A DNA stretch of 64,000 nucleotides from assembly GCF_023055435.1 (NCBI RefSeq), contig NW_025963857.1, positions 20,336,001 through 20,400,000 on the forward strand, in the 5' to 3' direction. Source of the stretch: Haliotis rufescens. Lineage: Eukaryota. Positions 12,348 through 63,534 of this stretch are shown in pieces. Position 1 is the stretch's first letter, and each line of letters opens with the position of its first letter. The notes beneath the pieces were generated by a model. It was not told the DNA's origin and ran no database searches. It was given only the letters and a program-made list of their open reading frames with translations. A program made the translations under genes and the position numbers.

Positions 12348-12426
12348 ATGAACAGGGGCCTTTGTATAGCCCTGACTCTCATTGTCGCCACCCAGGCGTC
12401 GACAGTAAGAAAAAAGGAAGATCAAG
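12348..12426 (+). CDS. Exon 1: signal peptide MNRGLCIALTLIVATQASTVRKKEDQ
   Basis: ATG in gccatcATG context, hydrophobic core, donor G|gtaagt, phase 1. Confidence 0.8.
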
Positions 12427-15400: not shown

Positions 15401-15504
15401 GGATATCAATACCGAAAAGCCAGTGACTGTCAACAAATGTGGTGTAAATTGAAAGTGGGTTTAACATTATTGTACTCTGCGAGTGTATGTGTGATTGTGT
15501 GTGT

Positions 15505-15535
<31 letters not shown>

Positions 15536-15848
15536 ATTGAGTGGTGTGTATGTGTGAGTGTNNNNNNNNNNNNNNNNNNNNNNNNNNNNNNNNNNNNNNN
15601 NNNNNNNNNNNNNNNNNNNNNNNNNNNNNNNNNNNNNNNNNNNNNNNNNNNNNNNNNNNNNNNNNNNNNNNNNNNNNNNNNNNNNNNNNNNNNNNNNNNN
15701 NNTGTGTGTGATTGAGTGATTGTGTGTGTGTGATTGAGTGATTGTGTGTGTGTGTGATTGAGTGATTGTGTGTGTGTGTGATTGAGTGATTTTGTGTGTG
15801 ATTGAGTGATTTTGTGTGTGTGATTGAGTGATTTTGTGTGATTGAGTG

Positions 15849-15922
<74 letters not shown>

Positions 15923-17555
15923 GTTGTGTGTCTGCTTCTACTAGTTGGGAATTATGCCGGTTTTAATTGCTGGCCCGTGCCACGAACCACAGATGCGGTC
16001 TCAACAAATGTAGAATGAATGAATGTTGGTGAATGCCGCATCAATATTCCAGCTATATGTAAACAGGTGACAGGAAGCAGGAGAACAGTAGACGATATAG
16101 GGCATGATGACACTTTGGCCAAGATGATTTGATGAATCTCTCAACATTACCAATCCATCGATACTTAAACACTTTGCATGTGGCCTTGATATACTTGTAT
16201 GTCACAGTGATGTAAAACACCACTCCCTCACTCGCCATGTCGTCATGTTATGATACTATCCTTTTTCTTCAGTGGATGAATGTGAAGATGGGTCGACATT
16301 TCGTTTTAGGTAGAAATGAACAAAACAAGCAAGTCAAGCTTATTGCTTAAATTTTTAGAACATAAACCTTTCTGTTTCCAGATATTCAGTCGACTGGGTT
16401 CTGTAAGTATAAGCTAAAGCGCTTTATTGTTTAAAATGGTTAGAAAATCGTAATAAAATGCATCGAATACTTCAAACGGTCTCTCTGGCAGATGTATGCA
16501 CCAAAACATCTTCTTTTAGACCTGTGCTGGTGCTTCTGTTAATTCTGTTGACCATATTTGGTTGCAATGACTATATTAAATTTTATTGACAACATATGGT
16601 TCCATAACTACATATTCTTAAAGTGACAATATGGACCTTTGTTCAATGTTCAACTGACTGTATATAATTCCATTCACGATATATGTTTCTATGGACTAAA
16701 TACATTGGTTTCCACAGAAACTTCTATTGACTATATATTGCTCTATTGTCTGTATATTTTTCTTAATGTATATTTTGTATCTGATCTAGTGCTCTACCGA
16801 GTATATATTCTCAAAAGAATTATTCTATGACACGTGGACATTTTGTTTTACACAGTTCACATAATGAACTGTTACTGAACAGAAACAACCTTCCATAACG
16901 TACGTAGTTGCATGTAACGTGCAGTGCTATGCAGTTCACCACCTTCTATGGTATGTGTGTTACTGCTGCTGTTACACGTGTCCTTCTGGTGCAATTAAAT
17001 GCGTCCTGATGCTGTACACGTGTCCTGTTGGTTCTATTACACGTGTCCTGCTGGTGCTATTACACGCACCCTGCTGGTGTGATTGCACGTGTCCTGCTGG
17101 TGTTATTACACGTGTCCTGTTGGTTCTATTACGCGTGTCCTGCTGGTGCTATTACACGTGCCCTGCTGGTGTGATTGCACGAGTCCTGCTGGTGTTATTA
17201 AACGTGTCCTGCTGGTGCTATTACACGTGTCCTGCTGGTGCTATTACACGTGCCCTGTTGGTGTGATTGCACGAGTCCTGCTGGTGTTATTACACGTGTC
17301 CTTTTGGTTCTATTACACGTGTCCTGCTGCTGCTAAAACATATGTGCTACTACTTTCTGCAGATGGCCAGTGCTCCTACAAAGGGAAGACTTACAATCAA
17401 GGAGAAAAATGGGAGGACGGCTGCAGCTACGACTGTGAGTGCGTGGACGGCGCGACTGGAACCTACAAGTGTACAAACAAGTATGTATAACCACACCTGC
17501 TACCACTACCACTACCATGACTACTACTACTATTACTACTTCCATCTACTTCCAT

Positions 17556-23700: not shown

Positions 23701-26700
23701 GCCTCGGCATGCGTGGATAAAATACCCAACTGTGCAGACTATACCAAGGAAGCCTGTCCCAAATATCCAGGCTGGGCCGGGTCAACCTGCAAGAAATACT
23801 GTGATCTATGTCGTAAGTGTCAAGAAACACCCAACCATCAAATCAACAAAGAAATGAAATATATAATGGCGTTTTGTCAAGATCAACTGCTACTCTTGTA
23901 CATTGGGGAGTCCAAACGGTGGCTTCACTCATTGCTGTCAAAATATTTTTTGTCCCTTTCCATAACCTAAATATCCCAATCATCGTATAAAAATATGTCA
24001 ATGTTTAGATGGGTTATGACAACGCCATTCGGGTCCATTTGGTTTATGTCGTTATCAGTATAATGCATCGGACAGTAGTGAATTAGTGATATTGTGTGAA
24101 TCAGGTGTAAACAGTGTGACGCCAGATCCCGACGGATACACTTCGTTATAGTTCAACAGCCGTATCTGAAGCCACGTTATGCCGTGCCTAACAGAAATTA
24201 GGTTTACACTTTCGTTTGACGACAAAAGCAAACGGAGGCAATATGAACAGTGCCACCAGTTAGTAATGAGTCGCGTTATACTCAAGTACAACAAAAATGG
24301 TCTTCTTACTACGACTTCTTATGGTAACAACTAAGCCAGACAAAGAAAGCTGGACTCTGATGAGGATATCGTCAAGAGCGTTCTTACTCATGTGATTTAG
24401 GGTATAAACATTACGTCCAACACTTGAGGTTTCAAATGTAACGTATTCCTCGCATCGGGTACTCAATTACACCCGCGATTCTAAAAACAAACACAACTGT
24501 TTACGGACATTGGAAAACATAAATCGTTCAACGTACTCAAACAGCTGTGAAACATATATGACGTCACTCAGGAATGCTATGATGTCATAATACAATGAAT
24601 GACGTTATATTGTTCCATGACAACTGACAAATGACAAGCTCTATGCATATATATCTGTTTAACACAATAGCGCCATTTCCTTGCTTTACGCGCCATTTCT
24701 TTACTTTCACATCACTTAAGAACATCTCATTTTGAAGAAGCAAATTTAACAATGTCGCTCATGACAAACGTGATGTACTAGAAACGCTACAGATTTATGT
24801 ATAATTTGGTACCCTTTTTGCTGTTAAACCTCCAATAAACTGGTTTGTTTTCGCTCTGTTACCAGATCTAGCAGCCCCAACTCCCGGACCGAACGGTAAG
24901 CACATGTTCAATGAGCCATACTCGTGTAAATATTTATAAGCCTGAACATTATATTATTATCCATCTGCGATTCAAAACAAACATAAATTAACCCACTGTG
25001 GCATAATGCTGTTCAGATCCAGTGTAAATTCCATCTTTGTATCAACTGGTATTCTCAGTGATGGCCTATGCATACCTTATCCGACGTATCAATTGCTCAA
25101 CTCCAATTGATGCCTCAACATGTTTTGAAAACCAAGTTTCAAGTTGACTTTATTTACATAAAACAAGGGCGGTGGGGTAGCCTGGTGGTTAAAACGTTCT
25201 GTATGGAGAGCAATGTGTGAAGCATATTCCTGGGGTCCCCGTCGTGATATTGCTGGAATATTGACTAAAGGTGGCGTAAAACGATACTGACTCACGCAAC
25301 ACTATGTAGAAATGTATCGCCACCACTTACTGTTCTCTCTTAGATGCCTGTGTGTACCAGGGCCAAGCCCACAAACAAGGAGAGACATGGGCCATTGGAT
25401 GCGACCAAAGATGTGTCTGTGAAAACGCAATCTATGGCTACTACAGATGCTCCAATACGTGAGTGTCTCGCCCTTAACCCATCCCAACCACCCATCCCAA
25501 TACCCCCGAAAAAGATAAAAAAAACCCATCCATTTCTGTGTTTTACGTGTCCCAAATTATCATTGAAGATGACAATGGACAAGCCTTAAAGCCTCATTTT
25601 CTCGATCTCCGCCAATGCCCTAAATATGCCTCCTCTTACTGGTAAAGACGTTTGTGACAGTCACCAGGACTAGTTAACTAATATTAAGTTGACATGTAAT
25701 CAATCAATCTTTATTGTATGAAAGGCCATTGGCCCATATACACATACAGATAAACAATATCATTTACAGCTCATTATATAATTATTGGATAACTAATATG
25801 ATGCTTGACATGTATTAGAGGTATTGTAATAACAGTGGTAATAACCACAGGAATGGAATAGCATAGCACGACGTTCAATACAAAAGAATCTATCAGTAAT
25901 ATACTCATCATGTCATGACAATTTGACAATTTAAATGTATATGCATTTCTAGTAGAAACAAACAGACAAAAATGAAATGTAGATACTTCTGATCTAGATG
26001 CGAAAGTTTCAAAACAACTATTTTTGACATGTACATATGGGAACGCTAATTTTGTATACAATAATGTAATTGAACAATTAAGGTGAAATATCTAGATATT
26101 GTTCAACTAGGAAACAGCATATCATTATTGTTGGCGAATATACCTACCTACGGCCTGTGTGCTCCTCCCTGCAGGTGTCCCTCCTACACCAACCTCCCCC
26201 CTCAGTGCAAGACGGATAAGAAGGTCAACGACTGCTGCGAAACCGTCAAATGTACATCCGGGTCTTTCTACTCCTCCTCCACCAACCTTCAGAGTATCGG
26301 CAGCGGGGGCGGCATCAACATCAACGGTGTGACCCCTAACCCATCCACAGGGACAGGGACAGGAAACGGAGGCAGTTCCCTAGGCACGGGGATGCAGCCC
26401 CCTAAACTATGTGAGAGATGTTATGTTTCTCAGCTTCATTAACTTTGGGGTGATGTTTTGTTTGTTTGTTTGTTGTGTTAAGCCGCACTCATCAATATTT
26501 CATCTATATGATGGCGGTCTGTAAATAAACGATTGACATCATGAGAATCGATCCATACCTTTGAGATACGATGACATGCATCAACTAAGTCAGCGAGCCT
26601 GACAACCCGATCCCATTAGTTGCCTCTTTCGACAAGCATAGTCGCCTTTTACGGCAAGCATGGGTTGCTGAACACCTATTCTACCCCGGATCTTCACGGG

Positions 26701-50600: not shown

Positions 50601-53600
50601 CACTCTATTGTCCATCTGTCCAGCTGTCCGCGCTACCCGAACATGCCTTACTACTGCACCATGGCATACGACCCCACCAACCCCTGCTGTCAGAAACCCG
50701 AGTGCCACGTTCCCAGCCCCTCCAAGACACCAAATGTCAGCCCCTTGCCTGGCGCCACCCAGGCTCCCACTGCAAGTAAGACTTTACAGAGGATATAGTG
50801 AACCGACACCATTAAAGGAGGTCAAGGCTCGGGAAATTGGCAGTTCCTGCAAATTTGATTCAAGTCTTTACGTTTTATGATGCATCATATTGAAACGGTT
50901 AATAATTACCGTTATCACCTGAAGACTGTGTCTTAGGTTCCCACAGGAACTAATTGCAATGTCAAGCCGAAACTGAAAATGAGCAACGAACCCCATTCAG
51001 CAACGTCCCTCTTTAAAGCAGATGTTTCTAAAGGAAATATGCAATTGAAATCTATTGAAGTTCTAATAACGTATTTAAAGCTACAAATACATTTCGATAA
51101 TCATAAGAAGTGTCCATTGTATAATTCCGACTCTATCATAAGCACGTATCTGTGAATCACAATCAAATAGTGATGAAAGCATGCTTGGTTTATAATCTCT
51201 CTGTTATACAAGAAACCCTGTCTGCTCGTTTCCTTACCACTACCTCGCACTACGCTTGTAATTGCAGACTTCTGTGCCTACAACGGTATCCCGTACAGAC
51301 AGGGGCAGAGTTGGCCAGTGGGATGCGACAAGGTGTGTCGTTGTGAGGACGCCATGGCCAACACCATCAACTGCGATGACAGGTATCTGTGTAAAGATAA
51401 ACCCATTCTCTCTTTTGTCATCCGAAAACTATTATAATGACCCATTTGTAAATGTATGCAAAGGTATCGTTTTTGATAAGTCTAGTACTATCATATATGT
51501 TCGATTCTGCATTTATTTTTCAGTAACATTAGGGGTGACCGTTTGGTGTTCTGGGGCGTGGGGCCTGGGCTTAAAAAGGAAATGCTGAAAATAAATTGGA
51601 CTTTGGTTTTACCAAAAAACTTTATTCGCTGGATGTCATAAAAAAAACATTGATCGGCTGCTCTCTTCAGGGAGAAAGTGTATGTCTTAATACAGTGACC
51701 GAAAACACTTTCTGTTTCTGAGGGGATCCCAAGCCTCCCTTGAATATTTAATGTCGATGCCTTAGAACAAGATTGATCAATTACTCAAGATGAAAATGAT
51801 AAGTAGATATAATAATAAGTATATAAAGCATAATTCTAATTGTACAGCAGTTGAAATGTCAAGTTTCTTTTTAAAATGGCAATATGCCTACTGTCAGTGA
51901 GACAACAAAGATTCACACAGTAACACTCCTGTCATGTCCTCTAGGTGCGCGAGCTACCCTCAGACCCCGTCTGACTGCGTGTTGATCACTGATCCCTCCG
52001 ACAAGTGCTGCCAGGTACCAAGCTGTGGTAACAGCCCCAACACCAACAACCCCTCCCACACCATCACCGGCGTCCCCGGCACCATCACCGGACAGATGCT
52101 ACCCCCAGACATCCCATTACCACTCGGCAAAAGTAAGACTGAACCTACAGATACCTGTATTGGTATAAATATACTTGCTGAAGCCAAGGACTTGCTAAAA
52201 GATTTACATGAAGATTAATTAAATTGGAACTGAGGAGATAATTATATAAATAAAGCGCCAAAACCCTTTCCATATCCAACAGAAATCTCTGCGAGTCGAT
52301 AGTACGATTCCGACTCTATCATGAGTATGTGTTTATGAATCACAACCAAATAGTGAAAATACCAGGTTTTTACGAAAAAGTGAGCGTATCCTGACCTACA
52401 GGTGGCACCCTTCACGAACACATGCAAAGGCAATTAATTAACAAATCCGTGGAAGTTGTCGTGGCCGACAAACGAAATGTCAGGCTTGTCATAAGATGAA
52501 GATTTTACTCGCAAAATTTGTCCAATATCATTTCATAATCTACACATGAGTTAACATGTTGCCACAGATATATATCTATTTTACAATCTTGAAAGTTATT
52601 AAAGGTTATTGATGTAACAAAAAGAATACGTCCGGATTAATAAATCTTGACAGTGTTAACACGACCCGCTCTCCACCCGTGTGGAGCCCACAATCCCATT
52701 GCCATTGGCTCATATGCATCTGTCTCAAGCATTCAATGGTGAAATGGATTCAATAGCATACTATACTTGAAATGGAAATAAGTTGTCATCTTGATAAAAT
52801 GATGACCCAGTTGGATTTCGGTGACTTATGGGTTTTTCCTATCAGTTACACCAAGGCTGCTGAACATGCACATGTGATTGTATCGTCATTTGACCAATAA
52901 TACCCGTTATCGCCTTCACTACGTATACCAACAAGCGTGCTCTACTCACAGGTGTATGCGTGTACAATGGCAAGAGCTATCACCAGGGAGAGAAGTGGGA
53001 GGACGGCTGTACCTACGACTGTGAATGTATTGACAGTGCAGATGGCAAATATAGGTGTACTGAAAAGTAAGTACTTTTTGACAATTGGCAAATCAAGTGT
53101 TTGGTTCATATTTGGATCTTACATGGGTGTCACACATTGTACCCATGTGTGGAATCGAACCCGGGCCTTTGGCGGGGCGAGGGTTCGATTCCAAATATGG
53201 GTACAGTGTGTGAAACCCATCGCCGTGATATTGCTGGAATATAACGTAAAACCATACTCATTCACACATTTGAACAATTCGCACCAACGTGTATGTGTTT
53301 CCTATGTTGCAGGTGCCCGGCGTTTCCCCAGGTGCCCTCCTACTGCACCATGATGCAGGACTCCAGGGACAAATGCTGCGAGGTTCCCTACTGCCCAACA
53401 CTTGTACCCCCAATGAACACGCTGTACCCCACACCATACCCGATTGGTTACACGCTGTACCCAGGCGCCACTCCATACCCAGGTCCATCTAAGTACCCAA
53501 TAGGGTTTACACCATCTCCAGGGGCAACACCGTACCTCGGACCTACTCCTTATCCAATTGGATACACTCCCTACCCAGGTGCAACTCCTTACCCAGGGCC

Positions 53601-56600
53601 AACACGCTATCCAATAGGTTTCACCCCCTCTCCTGGTGCAACGCCCTACCTTGGACCAACACCCTATCCAATCGGCTACACGCCTTACCTTGGTGCAACA
53701 CCCTACCCGGGACCAACACCTTACCCAATAGGATTCACACCCTCTCCTGGTGCCACACCTTATCACCTCCCTACACCCTGGCCAATAGGATTCACGCCAT
53801 TCCCTGGTGCTACTCCCTACCCAGGACCATCTAAATACCCGATTGGATTTGTCCCATCTCCCGGTGCTACTCCTTACCTGGGACCAACGCCATACCCAAT
53901 TGGATACACTCCATATCCAGGGGCAACACCTTACCCAGGGCCTTCAAAATACCCAATTGGTTTCACTCCTTCCCCGGGAGCTACTCCCTACCCTGGTCCA
54001 ACACCGTGGCCTATTGGGTACACCCCATCACCAGGTGCGACCCCATATCCAGGACCTAAGTTTAACGTACCGACACCATATCCCATTGGTTACACTCCGT
54101 CCCCTGGAGCTACCCCATACTTGGGACCAACTCCCTACCCTATTGGGTTCACGCCATATCCAGGTGCTACACCATACCCAGGACCATCGAAATATCCTAT
54201 AGGTTTTACACCTTCACCAGGTGCAACTCCTTACCTTGGACCGACACCGTACCCAATTGGATATACGCCATGGCCCGGGGCAACACCATATCCAGGTCCA
54301 TCAAAATATCCAATAGGTTTCACACCATCTCCAGGAGCTACGCCCTACCTTGGACCTACCCCATACCCCATAGGATATACACCATTCCCAGGTGCCACAC
54401 CTTATCCAGGACCAACAAGGTACCCTATTGGATTCACCCCATCACCAGGCGCTACGCCATATCTAGGACCAACACCGTATCCAATCGGTCATATTCCGTA
54501 TCCTGGGGCAACACCATACCCTGGTCCATCTAAATATCCAATAGGATTTACACCATCAATTGGTGCCACACCTTACCTAGGACCAACACCCTACCCGATC
54601 GGATACACTCCATGGGTAGGAGCAACCCCCTATCCAGGACCAACCCCCTATCCTATTGGCTTTACGCCATCGCCAGGTGCCACACCCTACCATATTCCAA
54701 CACCTTGGCCTATTGGCTATACGCCGTTTTTAGGTGCAACGCCATACCCAGGTCCTACACCCTATCCCATTGGATACACACCATCACCAGGTGCCACACC
54801 ATACCGTGCTCCAACACCTTGGCCAATTGGATACACCCCATTCCCTGGAGCAACGCCGTACCCTGGACCAACACCTTATCCCATTGGATACACACCATCA
54901 CCAGGCGCCACACCATACCATGCTCCAACACCTTGGCCAATTGGATACACCCCATTCCCTGGAGCAACACCATACCCTGGACCAACACCCTATCCTATTG
55001 GTTATACTCCTTCTCCTGGGGCTACACCATATCCAGGACCTACTCCATATCCAATTGGCTACACACCATTCCCTGGTGCAACACCTTATCCAGGCCCATC
55101 TAAATACCCAATTGGATACACACCATCTCCAGGTGCGACTCCATATCTTGGACCCACTCCTTACCCAATAGGTTTCACACCATACCCTGGTGCAACACCT
55201 TATCCAGGCCCATCCAAGTATCCTATTGGATACACGCCATCGCCTGGTGCTACACCATATCTTGGGCCTACGCCATATCCAATTGGTTACACTCCTTGGC
55301 CAGGGGCAACACCATACCCAGGACCATCCAAATACCCCTTTGGATACACACCGTCTCCCGGAGCTACACCATACCTTGGGCCAACCCCTTACCCAATAGG
55401 TTTCACACCATACCCTGATGCAACACCTTATCCAGGCCCATCCAAGTATCCATTTGGATACACCCCATCTCCCGGTGCTACCCCGTACCTTGGGCCAACT
55501 CCTTACCCAATCGGTTTCACTCCATCACCCGGTGCTACACCCTACCCAGGCCCATCCAAATACCCAATTGGGTTTACCCCGTTCCCTGGCGCAACTCCTT
55601 ATCTTGGACCAACACCTTATCCAATTGGCTTTACACCATACCCTGGAGCAACACCTTATCCGGGTCCATCTAAATACCCGATTGGATTTACCCCATCACC
55701 TGGTGCTACGCCCTACCCAGGACCAACACCGTACCCTGTTGGCTATACACAATCTCCCGGAGCTACCCCTTATAAGCTGCCAACTATTCCATCAACAAAC
55801 ACTCCCACCACTCCATATCCGATTGGTTACACCCCATGGCCAGGTGCAACGCCGTACCTAGGACCTACCCCCTACCCAATAGGATTCACACCATCTCCAG
55901 GTGCCACACCCTACCATCTTCCAACACCCTGGCCTATTGGTTATGTACCATACCCTGGTGCAACACCATACCCAGGTCCCACTCCCTATCCTATTGGATT
56001 CACACCATCCCCAGGTGCTACCCCATATCTTGGACCAACACCCTACCCCATAGGATATACGCCTTACCCTGGAGCCACCCCCTACCCTGGACCATCAAAG
56101 TACCCCATTGGATTCACACCTTCCCCTGGAGCAACTCCTTATTTGGGACCAACACCATATCCTATTGGCTACACACCATGGCCAGGTGCAACACCTTATC
56201 CAGGACCATCCAAATACCCAATAGGTTTCACGCCTGTCCCCGGAGGAACTCCTTATCTGGGACCCACTCCTTACCCCATTGGATATGTGCCATATCCAGG
56301 TGCAACCCCGTACCCAGGACCAACCAGATATCCTATCGGATTCACCCCATCACCAGGTGCCACACCCTATAGAGGACCTACACCTTACCCTATTGGCTAC
56401 ACACCATATCCAGGAGCAACACCTTATCCAGGACCCACCCCATACCCAATAGGATTCACACCTTCCCCAGGGGCGACTCCATACAGAGGCCCAACACCTT
56501 ATCCAGTTGGCTACACACCTTGGCCAGGAGCAACACCATACCCAGGTCCAACTCCATATCCTATTGGGTTTACGCCATCTCCTGGCGCAACACCCTTCCA

Positions 56601-59600
56601 TGTTCCTACTCCCTGGCCAATCGGCTACACTCCTTATCCTGGTGCTACTCCCTACCCTGGACCAACACCTTACCCCATTGGATACACACCCTCTCCTGGC
56701 GCGACACCCTTCCACCTAGGAACCCCATGGCCAATAGGTTTCACCCCTTACTTAGGGGCTACGCCATACCCAGGACCTACACCTTATCCCATTGGTTACA
56801 CACCATCCCCTGGAGCCACACCTTACAAAGCACCAACACCATGGCCCATTGGCTACACTCCCTATCCTGGAGCAACGCCATACCCAGGACCAACGCCATA
56901 CCCTATTGGCTACACACCTTCACCTGGAGCAACACCGTACAGAGCACCAACACCATGGCCAATTGGTTTCACACCTTATCCCGGAGCAACACCATACCCA
57001 GGACCAACCAAATATCCAATTGGATTCACGCCATCTCCCGGAGCCACCCCGTATCTTGGACCAACCCCATACCCGATAGGCTACACACCATTCCCTGGTG
57101 CAACGCCATATCCTGGCCCAACTCCTTATCCTATTGGGTATACACCATCACCAGGTGCCACACCATACTTAGGACCAACACCATATCCAATTGGATTCGT
57201 TCCTTATCCTGGAGCCACCCCTTACCCAGGACCATCTAGGTGGCCAATTGGTTTTACTCCTTCACCTGGTGCCACGCCATACAAGGGACCCACTCCTTAT
57301 CCCATTGGCTACACCCCATGGCCAGGTGCAACACCCTACCCTGGACCAACACCCTATCCAATAGGCTTTACTCCCTCTGTCGGAGGAACACCCTATCTTG
57401 GACCTACACCTTACCCCATAGGATATGTTCCTTACCCCGGTGCTACTCCATATCCAGGCCCCAGCCCATATCCTATTGGATTCACACCCTATCCAGGCGC
57501 AACGCCATACCTTGGACCAACACCTTATCCCATCGGCTACACTCCATGGCCAGGTGCAACACCTTATCCAGGACCATCCAAATACCCCATTGGGTTCACA
57601 CCTTCCATTGGAGCCACTCCCTACCTTGGACCCACTCCGTATCCAATCGGATACACGCCTTACCCTGGAGCAACACCTTACCCAGGTCCAACACCTTATC
57701 CCATTGGATTCACACCCTCGCCTGGTGCCACACCGTATCACCTACCTACACCTTGGCCCATTGGTTACACACCATTCCCTGGTGCTACACCTTACCCCGG
57801 ACCAAGTAAGTATCCAATTGGATTTACCCCGAGTATAGGTGCCACACCATACCTTGGCCCAACTCCTTACCCAATAGGATTCGTACCCTACCTCGGTGCC
57901 ACCCCATACCCAGGACCATCCAAGTACCCTATTGGATTCATCCCATATCCAGGAGCTACTCGCTATTTGGGACCTACTCCTTGGCCAATCGGATTCACCC
58001 CATCAATAGGGGCAACACCATACCCTGGACCTTCTAAATATCCTTTCGGTTTCACGCCATACCCGGGGGCAACACCTTATCTCGGACCAACACCATACCC
58101 GATTGGTTACACACCATCAACTGGTGCTACACCTTACCCTGGACCATCTAGATATCCTATAGGTTTCACCCCATCACCTGGAGCTACGCCCTACCTCGGA
58201 CCAACGCCATACCCTATTGGTTTTGTGCCCTACCCTGGAGCAACTCCGTATCCAGGACCAACACCTATACCAGGTATGCCTTCTTCACCATGTGACATAA
58301 TAGAGCAGGGTACTGGTATCTCACACACGGTATTCAACGTAATGTTATTCAACATAAATTGTAATCTTGGAAAAAGTCTTATATTGCGTATTTTCCTATA
58401 AGAAATGAACGTGTGTAATTCAAAACATATAGTGTACATTGGTGTAAAGGTATAGAATCAAATGTTTAATATTTGTGTGTTTGTTTGTTGTTTAACGCCG
58501 CTCTCAGCAATATTCCAGCTACAAACGGCGGTCTGTAAATAATCGAGTCTGGACCAGACAATCCAGTGATTGACATCATGATCCATACAAATGAGATACA
58601 ATGACCACCCGTTCCCGTTAGTTGCCTCATTCGACAAGCATGGGTTGCTGAAGACTTATTTTAACCAAGATCTTCAAGGAGATTAATATTTCTTAGCTGG
58701 GGGCAAGTAAAGTAAGGTCAGCATTGTATTATTTTTGCTTAACTCCAGGCTATACACCAATGACGGGCGTGACACAAGCACCAGGACTTAAAGGTGAGTG
58801 TCAGCTATTGTATTACGTTGTGATGTTGTGACTCCTCAATCAGCGAAAATAAAATAACCGTGAAAAACAGTAAATGTAACAAACAAACCTCGGACAAAAA
58901 AATAATTATTTATTTCATTATCCCATTATTATAAACAGGACATATATGGGTTTTTCTTGTATAATCATTGTTGTAAATATCTGCCATATATGTGTTAACA
59001 TTGGTTTCCTCTTGACAATTACCTGTTGTCCCTCCATCTAGGCATGTGCGAGTACAACAACCAGTACTACAAGGAAGGCCAGCTGTGGTACGATGGCTGC
59101 AGCAAGGTGTGCCGCTGCGAGAGTGCCGACGTCAACTTCCACAGATGCCAGGACAGGTAGGATGACATACGGGTTTGAACATTGTTTGTTGTTTAATGCC
59201 TCACTCAGCAATATTCCAGCTTTATGACGGGGCCGTTCGCGGCCTGTCATCTTCCCGAGGCAAGGGAGTTAACTGACTATAAAAGTCCAGTTTCCACCCT
59301 TGCCGAACTAGGCTGGATTTATGGAGTTATATTTTTGCTCGACTAACAAGTCTATGCATAGTCCAATCAAAATCGCGTAACGAAATGAACATCCGGTTCG
59401 TAAACTGCGGTGCAGATTTCGGTCGACTGCAGGATTTGCAAAGCATGTGTACCGTCAACTTAGCATCAACAGATATTTTCCAATTTGTTGAGTTTTTAAT
59501 GAAGGTCCTCACGTGATTTGATGCACTTCGCGAAGTAAGACCCGTTTTATTACGATATAGATCTTGATTATCGATCAGATCATAATAATTTGTTTGAAGC

Positions 59601-62600
59601 AAATGCAAGTGATATCTGAGGTGGAATCTGATTAGTCAATATGAGAGACATAGGATGGGCATTACTCGTGGCGCTACGATCGAACCCAGAAATTCCGGCC
59701 TAGCTCAGTGATGTAACCGGCACAAAGGCACACTCACTGATTATTTCAGATGGTCGCTGGGGTTTCGGATATAACAGTTGAACGTCTTTGTTCCAGGTGC
59801 ACGAAGTATGACAGCATCCAGTCTGACTGCCTCATGGTGCCTGATCCTAAAGACCCGTCCTGCTGCAAGAAGCCTCAGTGTCCAGTCCCGACCCCTGCAC
59901 CAGGAGTGACGCCGACACCAGGGTTCATCTCCGTCACCCCCGCCCCTGGCTACATCAACGGCTACGGCAAACCCCCGACCATGGCGCCAGGTGTATCGCC
60001 ATCACCCGGATCCCAGCCCACACCCTCGCCTAGAGGTAACAAGGAGTAGTTCGTTATACATGGATCACCCGGTTACACAATAGGATTAGTGTCATCCCAG
60101 GATCAACTTCAAAACGTCCACCACGAATAGCTGCAATATTGCTGATGCAGAGTTAAGCAAATATCCCACACAGACACAGGATGACAGTGTGTGACACGTG
60201 ATAACAATCACCCAGCTCCCTACAACACAGTACTGACCCTTTACAAGTGTCACAATAACAACATCAGTTTGCTGATACCGTAAACTACCAAAGACAGCAA
60301 CCCTGGTCTAGTGGATAGAGCGTCAGTGNNNNNNNNNNNNNNNNNNNNNNNNNNNNNNNNNNNNNNNNNNNNNNNNNNNNNNNNNNNNNNNNNNNNNNNN
60401 NNNNNNNNNNNNNNNNNNNNNNNNNNNNNNNNNNNNNNNNNNNNNNNNNNNNNNNNNNNNNNNNNNNNNNNNNNNNNNNNNNNNNNNNNNNNNNNNNNNN
60501 NNNNNNNNNNNNNNNNNNNNNNNNNNNNNNNNNNNNNNNNNNNNNNNNNNNNNNNNNATGTACAAGGGCCAGGTCTACAACGAGGGACAGACGTGGGAAG
60601 ACGGATGCGACTTCGACTGTGAATGTCTGGATGATGCTACTGGCCAGTACAAGTGCCTCAAGAAGTGAGTCACCAACTATTTCACATCCTGGTATTCTTC
60701 CCTTTAGCCAGTCATTACTCTCGCTATGTCCTGATCCTGTTTGGGTTCATCACTGGCATTCTATCACGCATTACCACTCAAGTTTCTACATACCTCTCCC
60801 CTATATGTAAACATATTTCATATAGGTCGACATGATTATTTTGCAAATGTCAACTGTTCTCCCTAACGAATAATTATGTTAATAACATTTCTCTCGAAAT
60901 ATATTATAAGGTAAAATGCCCATATATTCGCCCCGAATGCACATAAACTGCGGTATTACTTACTGACCTGGACCCACTTGCACAAAGCAATTTCAGCGCT
61001 AAGACTATCTTAAGCCTATGTTAAAGTATGGGAATTACGATCATCTTAGCTCTAAGATCGCTTTGTGCAAGTGGGCCCTGGACATCTGAGGAGCAACAGA
61101 AGATATACTGAGGGGCAAGAGAAACTATATCTCTCAGCTGATATTATTATGTGTTTGATTTTCAATTGGAAATACTCGTATCTGAAGTTAGTCATATAAT
61201 ATACAAAAAAGATTAACTTTACTGGCGTATAGTCAGCACTCAAAGAATACTTCTACATGGTTTTCCTTTCAGAAATATAATTAATTTAAAACTTTAAAAA
61301 AATTAACTATTTTTTTTACAACTGCTGATGATTCTATTAGACATCTTATCTTTAAGAAAGTAAAGGCACAAAATTACAAAATTTCAAACATTTCACAAAC
61401 TGTTGCAGGAAGGCGTGATTGTTAATAGACATAATCAAATTTAACAACAGTTTCTTTTTTTCAATTTTCAATTACTTAAAAAACAAACTAGGTATACAGT
61501 AAACTACGTTTATAACGAACACGCTAATAACGAACTGACCGATGTAACGAACATCTTTTTTAGTCTCGATCATATATGCTGCATATATATGCTTATAACG
61601 AACTACGGTTATTACGAACTAAAATTAGTGGTCCCTTTGAATACGCTATAACCGTAGTTTACTGTACATATTTTGCCCTTCAGTTTATGTCAAGTTATCC
61701 ATAGTTCGAGGCAAACGGAGTGATGATATAAAATCCCATTTATAAAGATTCTACCATCTTACATTATATACCGTTATTTTATCACATCGACTTAAACGAT
61801 ATTTCGAATAAATTTGACTTTTGATTCAAAAGGTTTCATTGTGTCACTTCTAAATGCCATTCAAAGACATGTTAAATCTTTGTTCATCTGGACGTTGAAT
61901 ATCCTTTGTATTTATTCTCCAGGTGTCCGGCGGTGCCTCAGCTTCCGAACCGCTGTGTGATGCTCCGTGACCCGACCAATCCCTGCTGCCAGCGTCCATA
62001 CTGTGACTTCCTGAATCCCACTCCCTTCCCTGGCGGTATCCCCACCCCCAACCCGATCCTCAACCCCTCTCTCGGACCTAATCAACACACAACACAGAAA
62101 CCAGGCCCCGGTGTGTCTAATGCAGCCAATCACAACCCTAGTCAAAGCACTGGTAAGTGTTAAAGACATCATGGTAATGACATCGAGTCATACATAAAGG
62201 CTTGAGGACCAGAAGTAACACATGACAAATACGCCACATTGGATTTTCCCTTTCGTCAACATCTTGATTAAAGATCCCGCAAAACAAACAATTACTAAAG
62301 TAAACAAGGTAGCGTTGCTTGTGTTCTATTACGAAGTGCCAACAACCGTGAAGTGTATGAAGTTTACAAAGTTTGTTAATAACGTGCAAATATATCATTC
62401 TGTAGCTGTCCTTCCATTGGAGAAGGTTCAGGCAAACTGGCACACAAGGATCCAATTCAACGTCTGTGGATTGAAAATGAGCAACAGACAATGGAACATA
62501 GTACCCCTTTAATATAACCATACATTTAAATATTATAAACAGTGGCATCTAAAACTGTGAGGAAAAGGTATGTGGGTCCGAATTTGAAAAAATAACTTTC

Positions 62601-63534
62601 CTGACACTACCATGTCTTTACGCACTGCTGTTATATTCCCGTCCTCGTCCAGGCTTCTGCGTATACAAGGGGGTGCCGTACCACAAAGGTCAGACATGGA
62701 GCGATGCCTGTGACAAGACGTGTGTGTGTGACGATCCTACCAACAACCTCTACACGTGCAGAGATAGGTCAGTTTTGTTTGTTTGTTTGTTTGTTTGTTT
62801 GTATGTTGTTTAACGCCGCACTCAGCAATATTCCAGCTTTATGACGGCGGTCTGTAAATAATTGAGTCTGGACCAGACAATCCTGTGAATGATATGATGA
62901 GCATCGGGTTAGTTAAAAACCCGATCTCCGAGAATATAAGTAAAAGTTAAATGTTTGCAAATCAGTTCACTCAATGTCGAAATCTTGTCTTACCGTGAGT
63001 CGTGGCGTGTCAGTGTATTGTCGTGGCGTGTCAGTGTTGTCGTGGCGTGTCAGTGTAGTGTCGTGGCGTGTCGTGGTGTGTCAGTGTAGTGTCGTGGCGT
63101 GTCGTGTCAGTGTAATGTCGTGGCGTGGCGTGTCAGTGTAGTGTCGTGGCGTAGCGTGTCAGTGTAGTGTCGTAGCGTGAGAGTGGATTGTCAATGAGTG
63201 TGATGTCACTCACTCACTCACTCGTTTACTTGCAGGTGTTCCTCCTTCAACAACCTCGCTCCCACGTGTACTCTCGAGACTGACCCCAACGACCCATGCT
63301 GTGTCGTCCCCGACTGCAATCACCTCCCTCCATTAAGTCTTACCCCCAACACACTCCCCGGCATCAACGGAACCAACAATCCTCTGAACCCCAATCCTTC
63401 CTACGGCCCCGGCTTCACTGGTCACCCCACGTACATCCAACCAACCAGCATCCCAGGCACCTTCACTGGTAATACTGGGTTCGGACCTGGTTACCCCGGA
63501 CAACAAGTCGGTGGATTGGTAGCTGGAATGAGAA
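12348..63534 (+). CDS. Giant secreted multi-exon protein: signal peptide, 3x ShKT, 24x VWC-like modules with Pro/Thr/Gly linkers, one ~1,600-aa Pro-Thr-Tyr-Gly repeat block; 3'-incomplete
   Basis: 56 exons with GT..AG boundaries whose phases chain without a stop (module junctions phase 1, intra-module introns phase 2). Hand-summed CDS about 12,904 nt, assuming 115 nt for the gap-truncated exon. Conserved Cys/Trp patterns in every module. Confidence 0.9.
13480..13500 (+). CDS. Exon 2: 21-nt micro-exon (EKRAAPT)
   Basis: ttttttgttccag| ... G|gtaagt, phase 1-1. Confidence 0.7.
14084..14347. repeat. 52-bp tandem repeat x5 (intronic)
   Basis: gacaaaactatg at 14087, 14139, 14191, 14243, 14295. 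Confidence 0.95.
14659..14769 (+). CDS. Exon 3: ShKT domain 1
   Basis: ETCVDQTDCTKYPSSVCTQYSDWSKDNCAAYCGICK; 6 Cys ending C-x3-C-x2-C; phase 1-1. Confidence 0.88.
15232..15360 (+). CDS. Exon 4: ShKT domain 2
   Basis: LHTTAPPACEDSLTNCPEYGLDACTKYAPWAHENCRKYCGFC; 129 nt, phase 1-1. Confidence 0.88.
15482..15920. repeat. (GT)n / GTGATTGA compound microsatellite with N-gap
   Basis: Direct inspection. Confidence 0.95.
16382..16402 (+). CDS. Exon 5: 21-nt micro-exon (HIQSTGF)
   Basis: tctgtttccag| ... T|gtaagt, phase 1-1. Confidence 0.6.
16970..17335. repeat. 23-bp minisatellite (acacgtgtcctgctggtgctatt), ~15 copies
   Basis: Direct inspection; ends just before the module 1A acceptor. Confidence 0.9.
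17363..17480 (+). CDS. VWC module 1 exon A
   Basis: GQCSYKGKTYNQGEKWEDGCSYDCECVDGATGTYKCTN; 118 nt, phase 1-2. Confidence 0.9.
17490..18056. repeat. (ACT)n trinucleotide microsatellite with N-gap
   Basis: Direct inspection. Confidence 0.95.
18056..18290 (+). mobile_element. Interspersed repeat family D (SINE-like, (AAAC)n tail)
   Basis: gtcg[c/t]aagaggcgactaacgggatcgggtggtcagg...gcggcgttaaacaacaaac; other copies at ~19223, 26457(-), 42520(-), 48394, 49100, 58478(-), 62775(-). Confidence 0.8.
18334..18476 (+). CDS. VWC module 1 exon B
   Basis: CPIYNSLPPACTLVSTPGQCCLQPVCDF..; phase 2-1. Confidence 0.9.
18520..19010. repeat. 64-bp minisatellite, ~7.5 copies
   Basis: ttcctagcaca recurs every 64 bp. 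Confidence 0.92.
19223..19445 (+). mobile_element. Family D repeat copy
   Basis: Similar to the 18056 copy. Confidence 0.78.
19525..20377. repeat. 85-bp minisatellite, ~10 copies, ending in the module 2A acceptor
   Basis: Direct inspection; shadow ORFs recur at 255-bp (3 x 85) spacing. Confidence 0.95.
20378..20492 (+). CDS. VWC module 2 exon A
   Basis: VCVYNGNNYYQGQTWAVGCDLRCTCNDATQGSYRCQS; 115 nt. Confidence 0.9.
20806..20968 (+). mobile_element. SINE family C copy at the start of the 51-bp array
   Basis: Full head and tail; a degenerate array unit lies upstream at ~20748-20790. Confidence 0.85.
20975..23135. repeat. 51-bp minisatellite, ~42 copies, composed of 3' splice-site sequence
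   Basis: Unit ttgttcacaatcttccatCTAACtaaaacatccctctctcttgtgttgtAG; last copy is the real acceptor at 23135. Confidence 0.97.
23136..23275 (+). CDS. VWC module 2 exon B
   Basis: CPVYGQMPTDCVMIKDPGQCCERPQCTF..; donor gtcagt. Confidence 0.85.
23684..23812 (+). CDS. ShKT domain 3 exon
   Basis: LHPTAASACVDKIPNCADYTKEACPKYPGWAGSTCKKYCDLC; 129 nt like exon 4. Confidence 0.88.
24866..24895 (+). CDS. 30-nt micro-exon (HLAAPTPGPN)
   Basis: ctctgttaccag| ... G|gtaagc, phase 1-1. Confidence 0.7.
25344..25458 (+). CDS. VWC module 3 exon A
   Basis: ACVYQGQAHKQGETWAIGCDQRCVCENAIYGYYRCSN; 115 nt. Confidence 0.9.
26175..26410 (+). CDS. VWC module 3 exon B
   Basis: CPSYTNLPPQCKTDKKVNDCCETVKC + Gly/Ser/Thr linker. 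Confidence 0.88.
26457..26702 (-). mobile_element. Family D repeat copy
   Basis: Reverse complement; flanked by ctttggg(g)tgatgt on both sides. Confidence 0.8.
27127..27241 (+). CDS. VWC module 4 exon A
   Basis: GCLYNGQLYVQNQQWEDKCATVCTCNDASTGIYACRE; 115 nt. Confidence 0.9.
27545..27680 (+). mobile_element. SINE family C copy
   Basis: Similar to the 3652 element. Confidence 0.78.
27986..28257 (+). CDS. VWC module 4 exon B
   Basis: CPKFDGVPAGCQMTPDPSDKCCTVPQC + linker. Confidence 0.88.
28632..29470. repeat. 41-bp minisatellite, ~20 copies
   Basis: ccgaaacgtagccttgattgaacaatgcactagtatctgt[a/g]. Confidence 0.95.
29610..29724 (+). CDS. VWC module 5 exon A
   Basis: FCEYKGRHYLQSERWEDGCKYQCVCERAYDGFWRCLD; 115 nt. 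Confidence 0.9.
29871..30153 (+). mobile_element. SINE family A copy
   Basis: ggttcgaatccc B-box, (ACTC)n tail, ccagta flanking both ends. Confidence 0.85.
30695..30894 (+). CDS. VWC module 5 exon B
   Basis: CKTYDDLPKDVCWLIPDPSDSCCQVPFC + linker. Confidence 0.88.
31229..31343 (+). CDS. VWC module 6 exon A
   Basis: YCVYKGQNYAQGQQWYDGCSMKCSCDNAQSGYYRCAN; 115 nt. Confidence 0.9.
31951..32144 (+). CDS. VWC module 6 exon B
   Basis: CPLYYNVPKGCTQLPDPIDPTCCTVPHCDF + linker. Confidence 0.88.
32340..32520. repeat. 53-bp tandem repeat, ~3.5 copies, resembling the module 7A exon start
   Basis: tacaagatgac at 32354, 32407, 32460. Confidence 0.8.
32547..32661 (+). CDS. VWC module 7 exon A
   Basis: YCLYKTKKYNQGQKWTDGCQYTCECEDADKGSYRCTD; 115 nt. 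Confidence 0.9.
33398..33546 (+). CDS. VWC module 7 exon B
   Basis: CPRYASLPQQCRLVTDFSNPCCQVPDCNF; 149 nt. Confidence 0.88.
33571..33847 (-). mobile_element. SINE family A copy
   Basis: Reverse complement of the 29871 element. Confidence 0.8.
34433..34547 (+). CDS. VWC module 8 exon A
   Basis: TCTYITAKYYQGQTWKDGCSKSCRCEDAVKGLYVCDD; 115 nt. Confidence 0.9.
35155..35363 (+). CDS. VWC module 8 exon B
   Basis: CPKFGSIPSQCQMVTDPADPCCQKPQC; AAG acceptor. Confidence 0.86.
35582..35696 (+). CDS. VWC module 9 exon A
   Basis: VCTYKGQQYHKGQTWVDGCSYNCECLDDQTGKYKCTE; 115 nt. Confidence 0.9.
35727..35892 (+). mobile_element. Young SINE family C copy with 13-bp TSD
   Basis: TSD taaacagggctgc at 35714 and 35893. 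Confidence 0.92.
36297..36457 (+). CDS. VWC module 9 exon B
   Basis: CPRFAGLPPQCNLMKDPSDPCCQVPVCDF. Confidence 0.88.
36604..36866 (-). mobile_element. SINE family A copy
   Basis: Similar to family A on the reverse strand. Confidence 0.78.
37369..37483 (+). CDS. VWC module 10 exon A
   Basis: MCVYKGTSYATGQQWFDGCDYTCECENGDQGIYRCNK; 115 nt. Confidence 0.9.
38029..38282 (+). CDS. VWC module 10 exon B
   Basis: CAVYDNLPKGCHLEADPQDPFCCKRPTC + Pro-rich linker. Confidence 0.88.
38452..38745 (+). mobile_element. Diverged SINE family B copy
   Basis: tRNA-like head, ggactggtcggctcggagtcag core, cacctc tail. Confidence 0.7.
38904..39018 (+). CDS. VWC module 11 exon A
   Basis: VCVYKGKQYAQGQKWQDGCVYNCECLDAHTGKYKCTE; 115 nt. 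Confidence 0.9.
39358..39506 (+). CDS. VWC module 11 exon B
   Basis: CPRYAQIPAQCHLVRDIYNPCCQKPYCDF; 149 nt. Confidence 0.88.
39791..39905 (+). CDS. VWC module 12 exon A
   Basis: FCVYNGTPFKQGATWNDGCDLACRCEDAKTGVYRCDE; 115 nt. Confidence 0.9.
40551..40777 (+). CDS. VWC module 12 exon B
   Basis: CASFQVQPGCSLIADPKDVCCKVPSC; 227 nt. Confidence 0.88.
41283..41397 (+). CDS. VWC module 13 exon A
   Basis: FCTYNNINYKTGQKWDDGCQYSCVCDDEKTGRYTCVQ; 115 nt. Confidence 0.9.
41570..41624. repeat. (CT)n microsatellite
   Basis: Direct inspection. Confidence 0.97.
41697..41866 (+). CDS. VWC module 13 exon B
   Basis: CAPYSNIPAYCTLVVDPTEPCCKKPSC. Confidence 0.88.
42711..42881 (-). mobile_element. Young SINE family C copy with TSD
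   Basis: TSD tctcgaacat(ga) on both sides. Confidence 0.92.
42950..43064 (+). CDS. VWC module 14 exon A
   Basis: SCVYKNQQYFEGQEWYDGCDKKCVCEDAKTNYYRCSS; 115 nt. Confidence 0.9.
43271..43497 (+). CDS. VWC module 14 exon B
   Basis: CASFGKVPPQCRLVADPKDPQCCQVPQC; 227 nt. Confidence 0.88.
43543..43865. mobile_element. Probable Tc1/mariner-type MITE
   Basis: Inverted repeat acaaaagaaacgcgaa (43553) / ttcgcgtttcttttgt (43840). Confidence 0.55.
44138..44252 (+). CDS. VWC module 15 exon A
   Basis: SCVYKGRDYRQGERWQDGCKYNCICEDETTGKYKCDE; 115 nt. Confidence 0.9.
44906..45057 (+). CDS. VWC module 15 exon B
   Basis: CASYPFVPPQCTLQRDLTDICCHKLACDF; 152 nt. Confidence 0.88.
45208..45601. repeat. 68-bp minisatellite, ~5.8 copies
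   Basis: ctcctatagtg at 45261, 45329, 45397, 45465, 45533. Confidence 0.95.
45775..45889 (+). CDS. VWC module 16 exon A
   Basis: FCVYKGVVYNQNQVWTEGCDRKCRCDDADTNFYNCYD; 115 nt. Confidence 0.9.
46154..46380 (+). CDS. VWC module 16 exon B
   Basis: CPSYNNPPPGCTLIVDPKDPCCKVPQC; 227 nt. Confidence 0.88.
47050..47164 (+). CDS. VWC module 17 exon A
   Basis: YCVYKGVKYTQGQTWQDGCGMNCECLDDSTGQYKCTE; 115 nt. Confidence 0.9.
47625..47839 (+). mobile_element. 5'-truncated SINE family A copy abutting the module 17B acceptor
   Basis: Family A body; tail ctcactcac ends about 12 nt before the acceptor. Confidence 0.78.
47852..48018 (+). CDS. VWC module 17 exon B
   Basis: CPNYVNIPSYCILVQDPRDNCCKTPTC. Confidence 0.88.
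48394..48618 (+). mobile_element. Family D repeat copy
   Basis: Similar to the 18056 copy. Confidence 0.8.
48703..48817 (+). CDS. VWC module 18 exon A
   Basis: VCVYNGRSYTQGQEWYDGCEKKCVCEDGMTGFVRCTD; 115 nt. Confidence 0.9.
49009..49096. repeat. (GTGTA)n microsatellite
   Basis: Direct inspection. Confidence 0.97.
49100..49357 (+). mobile_element. Family D repeat copy
   Basis: Similar to the 18056 copy, (AACC)n tail. Confidence 0.8.
49410..49639 (+). CDS. VWC module 18 exon B
   Basis: CAKFNSIAPNCVMVPDAKDPTCCLAPQC; AAG acceptor. Confidence 0.86.
50116..50230 (+). CDS. VWC module 19 exon A
   Basis: VCVYKGTPYKQGQRWQDGCDYTCVCEDGTTGKYDCTD; 115 nt. Confidence 0.9.
50624..50775 (+). CDS. VWC module 19 exon B
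   Basis: CPRYPNMPYYCTMAYDPTNPCCQKPEC; 152 nt. Confidence 0.88.
51268..51382 (+). CDS. VWC module 20 exon A
   Basis: FCAYNGIPYRQGQSWPVGCDKVCRCEDAMANTINCDD; 115 nt. Confidence 0.9.
51945..52132 (+). CDS. VWC module 20 exon B
   Basis: CASYPQTPSDCVLITDPSDKCCQVPSC. Confidence 0.88.
52952..53066 (+). CDS. VWC module 21 exon A
   Basis: VCVYNGKSYHQGEKWEDGCTYDCECIDSADGKYRCTE; 115 nt. Confidence 0.9.
53313..58273 (+). CDS. VWC module 21 exon B plus giant Pro-Thr-Tyr-Gly repeat (4,961-nt exon, ~85 x 19 aa)
   Basis: ttgcag|G TGC CCG.. (CPAFPQVPSYCTMMQDSRDKCCEVPYC) then repeats of GP[T/S][P/K]YPIG[Y/F]TP[Y/S/W/F]PGATPY[P/L]; donor CCAG|gtatgc; lies within the 1702-aa ORF of the track. Confidence 0.92.
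58749..58793 (+). CDS. 45-nt linker exon (GYTPMTGVTQAPGLK)
   Basis: aactccag| ... AAAG|gtgagt, phase 1-1; continues the GYTP motif. Confidence 0.8.
59042..59156 (+). CDS. VWC module 22 exon A
   Basis: MCEYNNQYYKEGQLWYDGCSKVCRCESADVNFHRCQD; 115 nt. Confidence 0.9.
59797..60035 (+). CDS. VWC module 22 exon B
   Basis: CTKYDSIQSDCLMVPDPKDPSCCKKPQC + linker. Confidence 0.88.
60558..60664 (+). CDS. VWC module 23 exon A (5' end hidden in N-gap; predicted start ~60550)
   Basis: MYKGQVYNEGQTWEDGCDFDCECLDDATGQYKCLK, donor gtgagt. Confidence 0.85.
60967..61081. mobile_element. Short palindromic MITE
   Basis: cccacttgcacaaagc / gctttgtgcaagtggg terminal inverted repeat, cctgg at both ends. Confidence 0.7.
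61495..61666. mobile_element. Tc1/pogo-type MITE with TA target site
   Basis: TA-CAGTAAACTACG ... CGTAGTTTACTG-TA. Confidence 0.8.
61923..62152 (+). CDS. VWC module 23 exon B
   Basis: CPAVPQLPNRCVMLRDPTNPCCQRPYCDF + linker. Confidence 0.88.
62653..62767 (+). CDS. VWC module 24 exon A
   Basis: FCVYKGVPYHKGQTWSDACDKTCVCDDPTNNLYTCRD; 115 nt. Confidence 0.9.
62993..63180. repeat. GTGTC/GTGGC-based low-complexity tandem repeat
   Basis: Direct inspection. Confidence 0.85.
63236..63534 (+). CDS. VWC module 24 exon B
   Basis: CSSFNNLAPTCTLETDPNDPCCVVPDC + linker; donor gtgagt, so the gene continues. Confidence 0.88.

Follow-up and report, generated by a model that had tools for sequence, protein, structure and literature searches.

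A 4.96-kb repeat exon in a gene for a predicted giant secreted protein of Haliotis rufescens: an old array of 19-residue units under purifying selection

The repeat exon, its transcript and its gene

The window analyzed here is a stretch of 64,000 nucleotides from the red abalone, Haliotis rufescens (contig NW_025963857.1, positions 20,336,001 to 20,400,000 of the forward strand), and it contains, at 53313–58273 of its forward strand, a single exon of 4.96 kb that encodes a long tandem repeat with a unit of 19 residues. An acceptor AG precedes 53313 and a donor GT follows 58273. Of the six reading frames, one is open, that beginning at 53314, in which 1653 codons run without a stop; the other five contain from 14 to 111 stops. 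The first 27 residues of the exon (53314–53394) are the second, or B, half of a VWC domain, number 21 of the gene; after a short lead-in, the array itself occupies 53428–58273, with 84–85 units of 19 residues.

The array was resolved into 84 anchored units, over a length of 1615 residues, with a spacing of exactly 19 residues in 81 of the 83 intervals and with two short insertions. Columns 11 and 18 of the unit alternate along almost the whole array, so that the true period is 38 residues, corresponding to about 42 dimers. The best-scoring period given by Tandem Repeats Finder (TRF) was 114. The unit can be read as three Pro-X-Pro-X-Pro segments with Gly-containing hinges between them. Pro accounts for 32% of the repeat part, Gly for 15%, and Thr and Tyr for 14% each (Tyr 13.6%); Cys and Glu are absent, and Asp occurs once. 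Pro and Gly add up to 47% of the residues, aromatic residues to 18% and Ser plus Thr to only 18%, Lys represents 1.4%, and the net charge is weakly positive (33 Lys or Arg versus 1 acidic residue). A motif count found no Pro-Pro, Pro-Pro-Pro, Ser-Pro-Pro or Tyr-X-Tyr among the 1615 residues. Of the 228 Thr residues, 217 are followed by Pro; the pentapeptide X-T-P-X-P is matched at 167 sites, and there are 116 Pro-Gly sites.

Concerning the individual columns, Ile6, Gly7, Ala14 and Thr15 are near-invariant across units. The aromatic residues are spaced by 3 to 9 positions, mostly 4 or 6, and most of them are exchangeable: column 8 contains Tyr or Phe in almost equal numbers (42:41), Tyr and Trp replace each other in column 4, and column 11 is occupied by Ser, Tyr, Phe or Trp. 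Column 17 alone is specific for Tyr (82 of 84 units). A side observation concerns a subtype of units in 53428–58273 with His, Arg or Lys in column 18 and a residue other than Gly in column 19, which is tied to Trp in column 4 of the unit that follows it (10 of 13; Fisher test, 4e-8). The basic residue and the following Trp could form a cation-pi pair, or they could merely mark an old unit subtype; it was not found in the array of the paralog described below.

Spliced transcripts include this coding exon. In four of four public runs, from three organisms and four studies, contigs connect 53066 with 53313 and 58273 with 58749, skipping in each case a GT..AG interval; the second joint was printed as 58269 to 58745 in the contig comparison, and a shift of +4 was applied to it. 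These runs were listed as RNA by guess only, and their contigs are considered transcripts because the introns are omitted at the exact exon borders. A genome search found no processed copy of the gene, the only loci recovered being two arrays and one three-unit exon. Spliced sequence reaches about 6.6 kb upstream of the junction in one contig and about 1.4 kb downstream in another. The initial annotation of the window, made from the letters alone, had proposed an exon with these same borders, which agree exactly with the AG and GT signals and with the spliced contigs, and had counted on its presence in mRNA. Its description of about 85 units of 19 residues, often paired as 38-residue dimers, lacking Cys and almost lacking acidic residues, and with exchange among Tyr, Phe and Trp in the aromatic positions, also holds, the exchange being located in columns 4, 8 and 11.

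Judging from the sequence, the product of the gene is predicted to be a giant secreted protein with a candidate signal peptide, at least six ShK domains and at least 32 VWC domains, all the features in the window being on the forward strand. A candidate first exon (12348–12404), recognized by sequence inspection only, encodes a Met and a hydrophobic stretch resembling a signal peptide, and ends in a GT donor. Two exons with six-Cys ShK domains occupy 14667–15359 (starts at 14667 and 15258); they were recognized by a scan for the six-Cys pattern and by the Pfam ShK profile, with E = 2.6e-6 (above the cut-off) and E = 0.014, respectively. A third ShK domain, with the six-Cys pattern, lies at 23710–23811, and three more are found downstream.

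Before the array there are 21 tandem VWC domains (17371–53394), each composed of an A exon with 5 Cys and a B exon with 5 Cys followed by a short linker of Pro, Thr, Gly and Ser, in strict A/B alternation. The A half of VWC number 21 is the exon at 52952–53066, where the contig pieces end exactly and from which the GT..AG joint to 53313 starts in the four runs. The ten-Cys VWC pattern is present, the A halves containing C-x-C and the B halves CC-x(3-5)-C. In the comparison with Pfam PF00093, made on half domains since every domain spans two exons, the scores were 22.6 and 17.5 bits versus the cut-off of 27.6 (E = 1.3e-4 for one half domain); a Pfam scan of the Cys-rich exons returned, besides ShK, solely VWC, fn1 and TILa. 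The linkers that follow the other B exons contain 20–60 residues of Pro, Thr, Gly and Ser, with TPxP in 18 of 31, so the array looks like one linker between VWC domains that was enlarged about fifty-fold. In the region extending from 20 kb upstream of the window to 40 kb downstream of it, VWC and ShK were the only patterns noticed, with no VWD, C8, TIL or CTCK; this is a weak test, as not every exon was scanned with profiles.

The array exon is followed by an intron of 475 nucleotides (58274–58748), delimited by the GT..AG joint of the four runs and occupied by a high-copy element resembling a short interspersed element (SINE), on which contigs pile up at 58313–58710. The linker after the array is closed by a mini-exon of 15 codons at 58749–58793, defined by spliced contigs. 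The sequence split by this intron is one continuous exon in the paralog; therefore, an intron was either gained or lost at this point. Another side observation is that contig depth reaches tens of thousands at the intronic tRNA-like or SINE-like elements of 53139–53337 and 58313–58710, which are highly repeated, in the RNA-derived contigs of four of four runs. VWC domains resume at 59047–63317, with A/B halves at 59047/59798, ?/61924 and 62658/63237. Since no A half was seen between the B halves at 59798 and 61924, the N gap at 60329–60557 probably hides one A-half exon. At least 11 VWC domains follow the array, and the gene continues to about 16 kb past the end of the window.

Selection on the array and its relatives

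The units were compared with each other at the codon level. For the 3486 pooled unit pairs, the proportions of non-synonymous (pN) and synonymous (pS) differences were 0.14 and 0.71, with a ratio of non-synonymous to synonymous rates (dN/dS) of about 0.07, and of 0.06 for neighboring units. Identity between units was 0.90–0.93 in the first codon position, 0.77–0.88 in the second and 0.35–0.40 in the third. The same residue was encoded by the same codon in 39.4% of cases versus 38.2% expected from the codon usage of the array itself. As this rate is practically that of random choice, the silent sites are saturated. The youngest block detectable in the array has a same-codon rate of about 0.60.

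In shuffles that kept the protein and the codon usage, the longest exact DNA repeat was 28.5 ± 3.3 nucleotides versus 48 in the array, and repeated words were less common than in the real sequence. This slight excess of DNA repetition, a faint residue of old duplications, indicates that the scrambling of silent sites is a passive decay and not an avoidance of repeats. Active selection for codon scrambling was considered and ruled out, since the shuffle null holds fewer repeated DNA words than those observed.

Contigs from two other species tile the exon collinearly, with zero indels over 4.96 kb and about 1% difference. The changed codons listed were 35, of which 24 synonymous and 11 non-synonymous, for 1378 synonymous and 3581 non-synonymous sites, which puts dN/dS at about 0.18 and dS at about 0.02. 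Among units, dS is above 2, roughly a hundredfold the value between species. The array is therefore old and frozen, with no recent turnover of units, and is under strong purifying selection.

The initial annotation had argued for an old array held by purifying selection on its proline and aromatic periodicity, with the protein kept and the synonymous sites scrambled, and had expected dN/dS far below 1. The values among units and between species, the third-position identity and the same-codon rate all agree with that view, and so does the consensus kept by the paralog. The contrast then drawn with the near-identical satellites in the introns of the window was also correct, as these are 93–98% alike versus 68–77% for the coding array. 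An annotation artefact, or a low-complexity expansion that is neutral and without selected function, would explain the repetitive nature of the exon and nothing more; the open frame of 1653 codons, the spliced RNA, the low dN/dS (far below 1 among units as well as between species) and the conserving paralog practically rule it out.

The paralog is a whole gene, whose array exon (G000:C101:5028719-5032024, minus strand) has 1102 codons, opens with a VWC B half and contains about 54 units. This gene is collinear with that of the window and more compact, with an equal order of VWC and ShK domains. Position-matched VWC halves of the two genes are 62% identical (55% without Cys), while the consensus units of the two arrays are equal except for one aromatic position each (Phe/Tyr in column 8 and Tyr/Trp in column 11). 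No synonymous collinearity was found between the arrays of the window and the paralog. The shared consensus, set against diverged VWC domains and in the absence of synonymous collinearity, indicates that the 38-residue dimer predates the gene duplication; by these identities, the dimer was held more tightly than the folded domains. The paralog array holds one younger segmental duplication of 11 units (same-codon rate 0.78). Apart from it, both arrays are saturated, by which an independent recent expansion of the two was ruled out. As a separate observation, an intron of the paralog contains a minisatellite (about C101:5025978-5028017; reverse-strand offsets 13982-16022 of the joined loci L015+L011+L014) formed by many copies of the acceptor-side start of a VWC A exon.

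A different kind of relative is an exon of a CD109-like thioester protein (G000:C583:5699601-5699942, minus strand), with three 19-residue units placed directly before an FPETWLW motif, in the bait or hypervariable region. One of the three is identical to the consensus of the array, and their silent sites are saturated with respect to both arrays. The insert of three units is present also in the proteins of H. asinina and H. rubra; in the former, the units span residues 680–743, between the bait-region domain (466–600) and the A2M domain (761–852).

The conservation of these units in the bait region of three Haliotis species despite saturated silent sites, and the very strict column conservation of the array, could be understood if the unit were a motif at which some putative partner docks or cleaves, be it a protease, a modifying enzyme, a lectin, chitin or a mineral, either displayed in multivalent form or acting as a substrate imitated by the thioester bait. 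On the other hand, proteases generally cut Pro-rich chains poorly, and the units could also have reached the bait when a linker fragment was captured once and then drifted; an array of recognition sites seems very unlikely. We are equally doubtful of a related idea, in which the unit is a module common to a giant structural polymer (about 85 copies) and to a CD109/TEP-like (thioester-containing protein) bait (three copies), the bait being a decoy of the animal's own structural protein that would trap proteases, for instance those of pathogens or borers.

Concerning other proteins, the matching ones from Haliotis were 76–79% identical. An exhaustive search of 1.84 billion representatives gave one true relative, a protein of H. 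rubra with ShK domains and repeats, and no homolog of the repeat outside Haliotis; the remaining matches were, on inspection, unrelated low-complexity proteins. The relative, XP_046576224, is named 'nematocyst expressed protein 4-like' and has 402 residues, in which about ten units, very uniform, accompany a signal peptide and three ShK domains. Nothing close to its ShK part was found in the H. rufescens genome. A word-indexed homology search with the whole exon, which covers proteins of 909–2893 residues and thus leaves full-length orthologs beyond its range, found the CD109-like protein as the only match. The repeat matched nothing in Pfam, NCBIfam, PDB sequences or the protein Atlas. The VWC half-exon had two short relatives among Logan contigs. 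Weaker genome matches on contigs C46, C1, C334 and C594 are non-coding satellites or simple repeats and were discarded as relatives. Full-text motif searches and searches on abalone VWC, ShK and mucus yielded no paper describing the gene.

Proposed structure and comparison with known proteins

The reading preferred here, with a confidence that we would place about midway between doubt and certainty, is that the array forms a long, non-globular and probably O-glycosylated tether with regularly spaced aromatics, that is to say, an enlarged linker in a giant secreted disulfide-rich protein. The protein in which it stands would combine more than 30 VWC domains with ShK domains and a signal peptide. 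AlphaFold2, run on ten units with an alignment composed of six array segments in register, gave a mean pLDDT (predicted local distance difference test) of 28 and no secondary structure; on this model, the array is predicted to be unstructured. The chain would be non-globular and rich in polyproline-II and turn conformations. Polyproline-II has a rise of about 0.31 nm per residue, and the full contour length over 1615 residues would be about 0.5 µm. Such a long tether would be extensible, and its regularly spaced aromatic side chains may provide reversible cohesion, while the flanking VWC blocks would anchor it covalently or multivalently in an extracellular polymer, which could be mucus, an adhesive, a matrix or a layer associated with the shell. 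All that is proposed on modifications, mechanics and tissue is conjectural.

High combined contents of Pro and Gly have been linked to hydrated, disordered elastomers such as elastin-like proteins (PMC5703643, citing Rauscher 2006), and X-T-P-X-P is given as a consensus pentapeptide for mucin-type O-glycosylation (PMC4123919). The earlier suggestion that the Thr-Pro sites could carry O-glycans stands at the level of the motif (217 of 228 Thr followed by Pro; 167 pentapeptides), and such glycans are probable. X-Pro-Gly is the context used by collagen-type prolyl hydroxylases, so hydroxylation of the array would be possible as well. Elastin, resilin, flagelliform silk and high-molecular-weight glutenin resemble the array in the high content of Pro plus Gly, the Pro-Gly turns every 6–7 residues, the predicted disorder and the regular aromatics, but they are unrelated to it in sequence, and the Thr-Pro content of the array points to glycosylation.

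This motif content also raises the question of whether the array is just an ordinary mucin-type domain rich in Pro, Thr and Ser, a dense bottle-brush of O-glycans for hydration and lubrication in which the aromatics are incidental. Gel-forming mucin genes have a large central repeat exon flanked by exons for Cys-rich domains, VWC included, and the gene studied here is similar in its single, huge, Pro/Thr-rich exon between Cys-rich exons and in the strong O-glycosylation context of its Thr residues. A combination of ShK domains with a mucin core also has a precedent in Tc-MUC-1 to 4 of Toxocara canis (PMC7333891). These have ShK (SXC) domains and a Thr-rich repeat core, the layout found in XP_046576224 of H. 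rubra, although they belong to another phylum, have another repeat sequence, are far smaller and lack the VWC array. On the other hand, 18% of the residues of the array are aromatic and Ser plus Thr amount only to the same percentage; the aromatic, Ile, Gly and Ala columns are as strongly conserved as those of Thr and Pro; the DNA of the units has not been homogenized and no length variation was observed across the species compared; and neither VWD-C8-TIL nor CTCK was seen in the weak test mentioned above. On balance, an ordinary mucin domain is considered unlikely.

The tanned adhesive or elastomer proposed in the initial annotation, by analogy with mussel foot protein 1 (mfp-1) and plant extensins, would require that Tyr be converted to 3,4-dihydroxyphenylalanine (DOPA) or dityrosine, with hydroxylation of Pro and covalent curing. 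The high Tyr content, the near invariance of Tyr in column 17, the 116 X-Pro-Gly sites and the weak positive charge agree with it, and mfp-1 is likewise a secreted molluscan tandem repeat of Pro, Thr and Tyr, and weakly cationic. However, the unit of mfp-1 has 10 residues with about 20% Lys, whereas that of the array has 19 or 38 with 1.4% Lys and no Pro-Pro, its Tyr is exchangeable and its DNA is not homogenized. Extensins and other hydroxyproline-rich glycoproteins differ in their Ser-Pro(3-5) blocks and Tyr-X-Tyr cross-link motifs, which were not found in the array, and no similarity to foot proteins turned up among the 1.84 billion representatives. DOPA or dityrosine chemistry needs a phenol group. 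The free replacement of Tyr by Phe or Trp in columns 4, 8 and 11 indicates that, with the exception of column 17, aromaticity and not the phenol is selected; in terms of sequence, this exchange would fit reversible aromatic contacts better than phenol chemistry. The analogy with mfp-1 and extensins is somewhat weakened by these swaps, by the scarcity of Lys and by the lack of Pro-Pro and Ser-Pro-Pro, and we regard tanning as distinctly unlikely.

The nearest architectural analog of the tether proposed is Lustrin A, from the nacre of the same abalone, with Cys-rich modules that alternate with Pro-rich linkers and a large, low-complexity, aromatic-containing domain thought to be elastic or to act through sacrificial bonds (PMC5850307). 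The two proteins share organism and a similar build, but the Cys modules of Lustrin A form a Pfam family of their own without matches in the Cys-rich exons of the window, where VWC matched, and its large domain is rich in Gly and Ser, while the array is built of Pro, Thr, Tyr and Gly. Kielin and kielin-chordin-like proteins share the long tandem array of VWC (chordin-type Cys-rich) domains, without the giant repeat insert or the ShK domains; concerning the C-terminal VWD typical of kielin, no VWD-like open frame was noticed in 24 kb downstream, which is a weak test. As a smaller protein than the window gene product, Lustrin A differs also in size.

Two points weigh against the extended tether. 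One is that the near-invariant Ile6, Gly7, Ala14 and Thr15 are stricter than a simple spacer or brush needs, which may point to a well-defined fold, or to a particular partner, invisible to AlphaFold2. The other is that the VWC identity comes from half-domain scores under the Pfam cut-off together with Cys spacing.

Significance

The array is a repetitive low-complexity domain of a molluscan secreted protein, unusual in its size, in its frozen, unhomogenized state and in the reuse of its unit in a thioester bait. Abalone are reference organisms for tough natural composites and underwater attachment, and here a very large and well-expressed protein, together with its repeat, is without a described counterpart. 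The array provides a clean example of selection on the sequence of a material and not on DNA repeats, in which an exact periodicity of the protein can persist for very long without concerted evolution. Its unhomogenized DNA makes the gene easy to assemble, clone and synthesize, and the unit, with its proline rods, glycine hinges, glycosylation-type Thr and evenly placed aromatics, is a candidate new design for biopolymers that are extensible or cohesive. The same unit also occurs in a thioester bait, and a connection between innate immunity and a structural material can thereby be put to the test.

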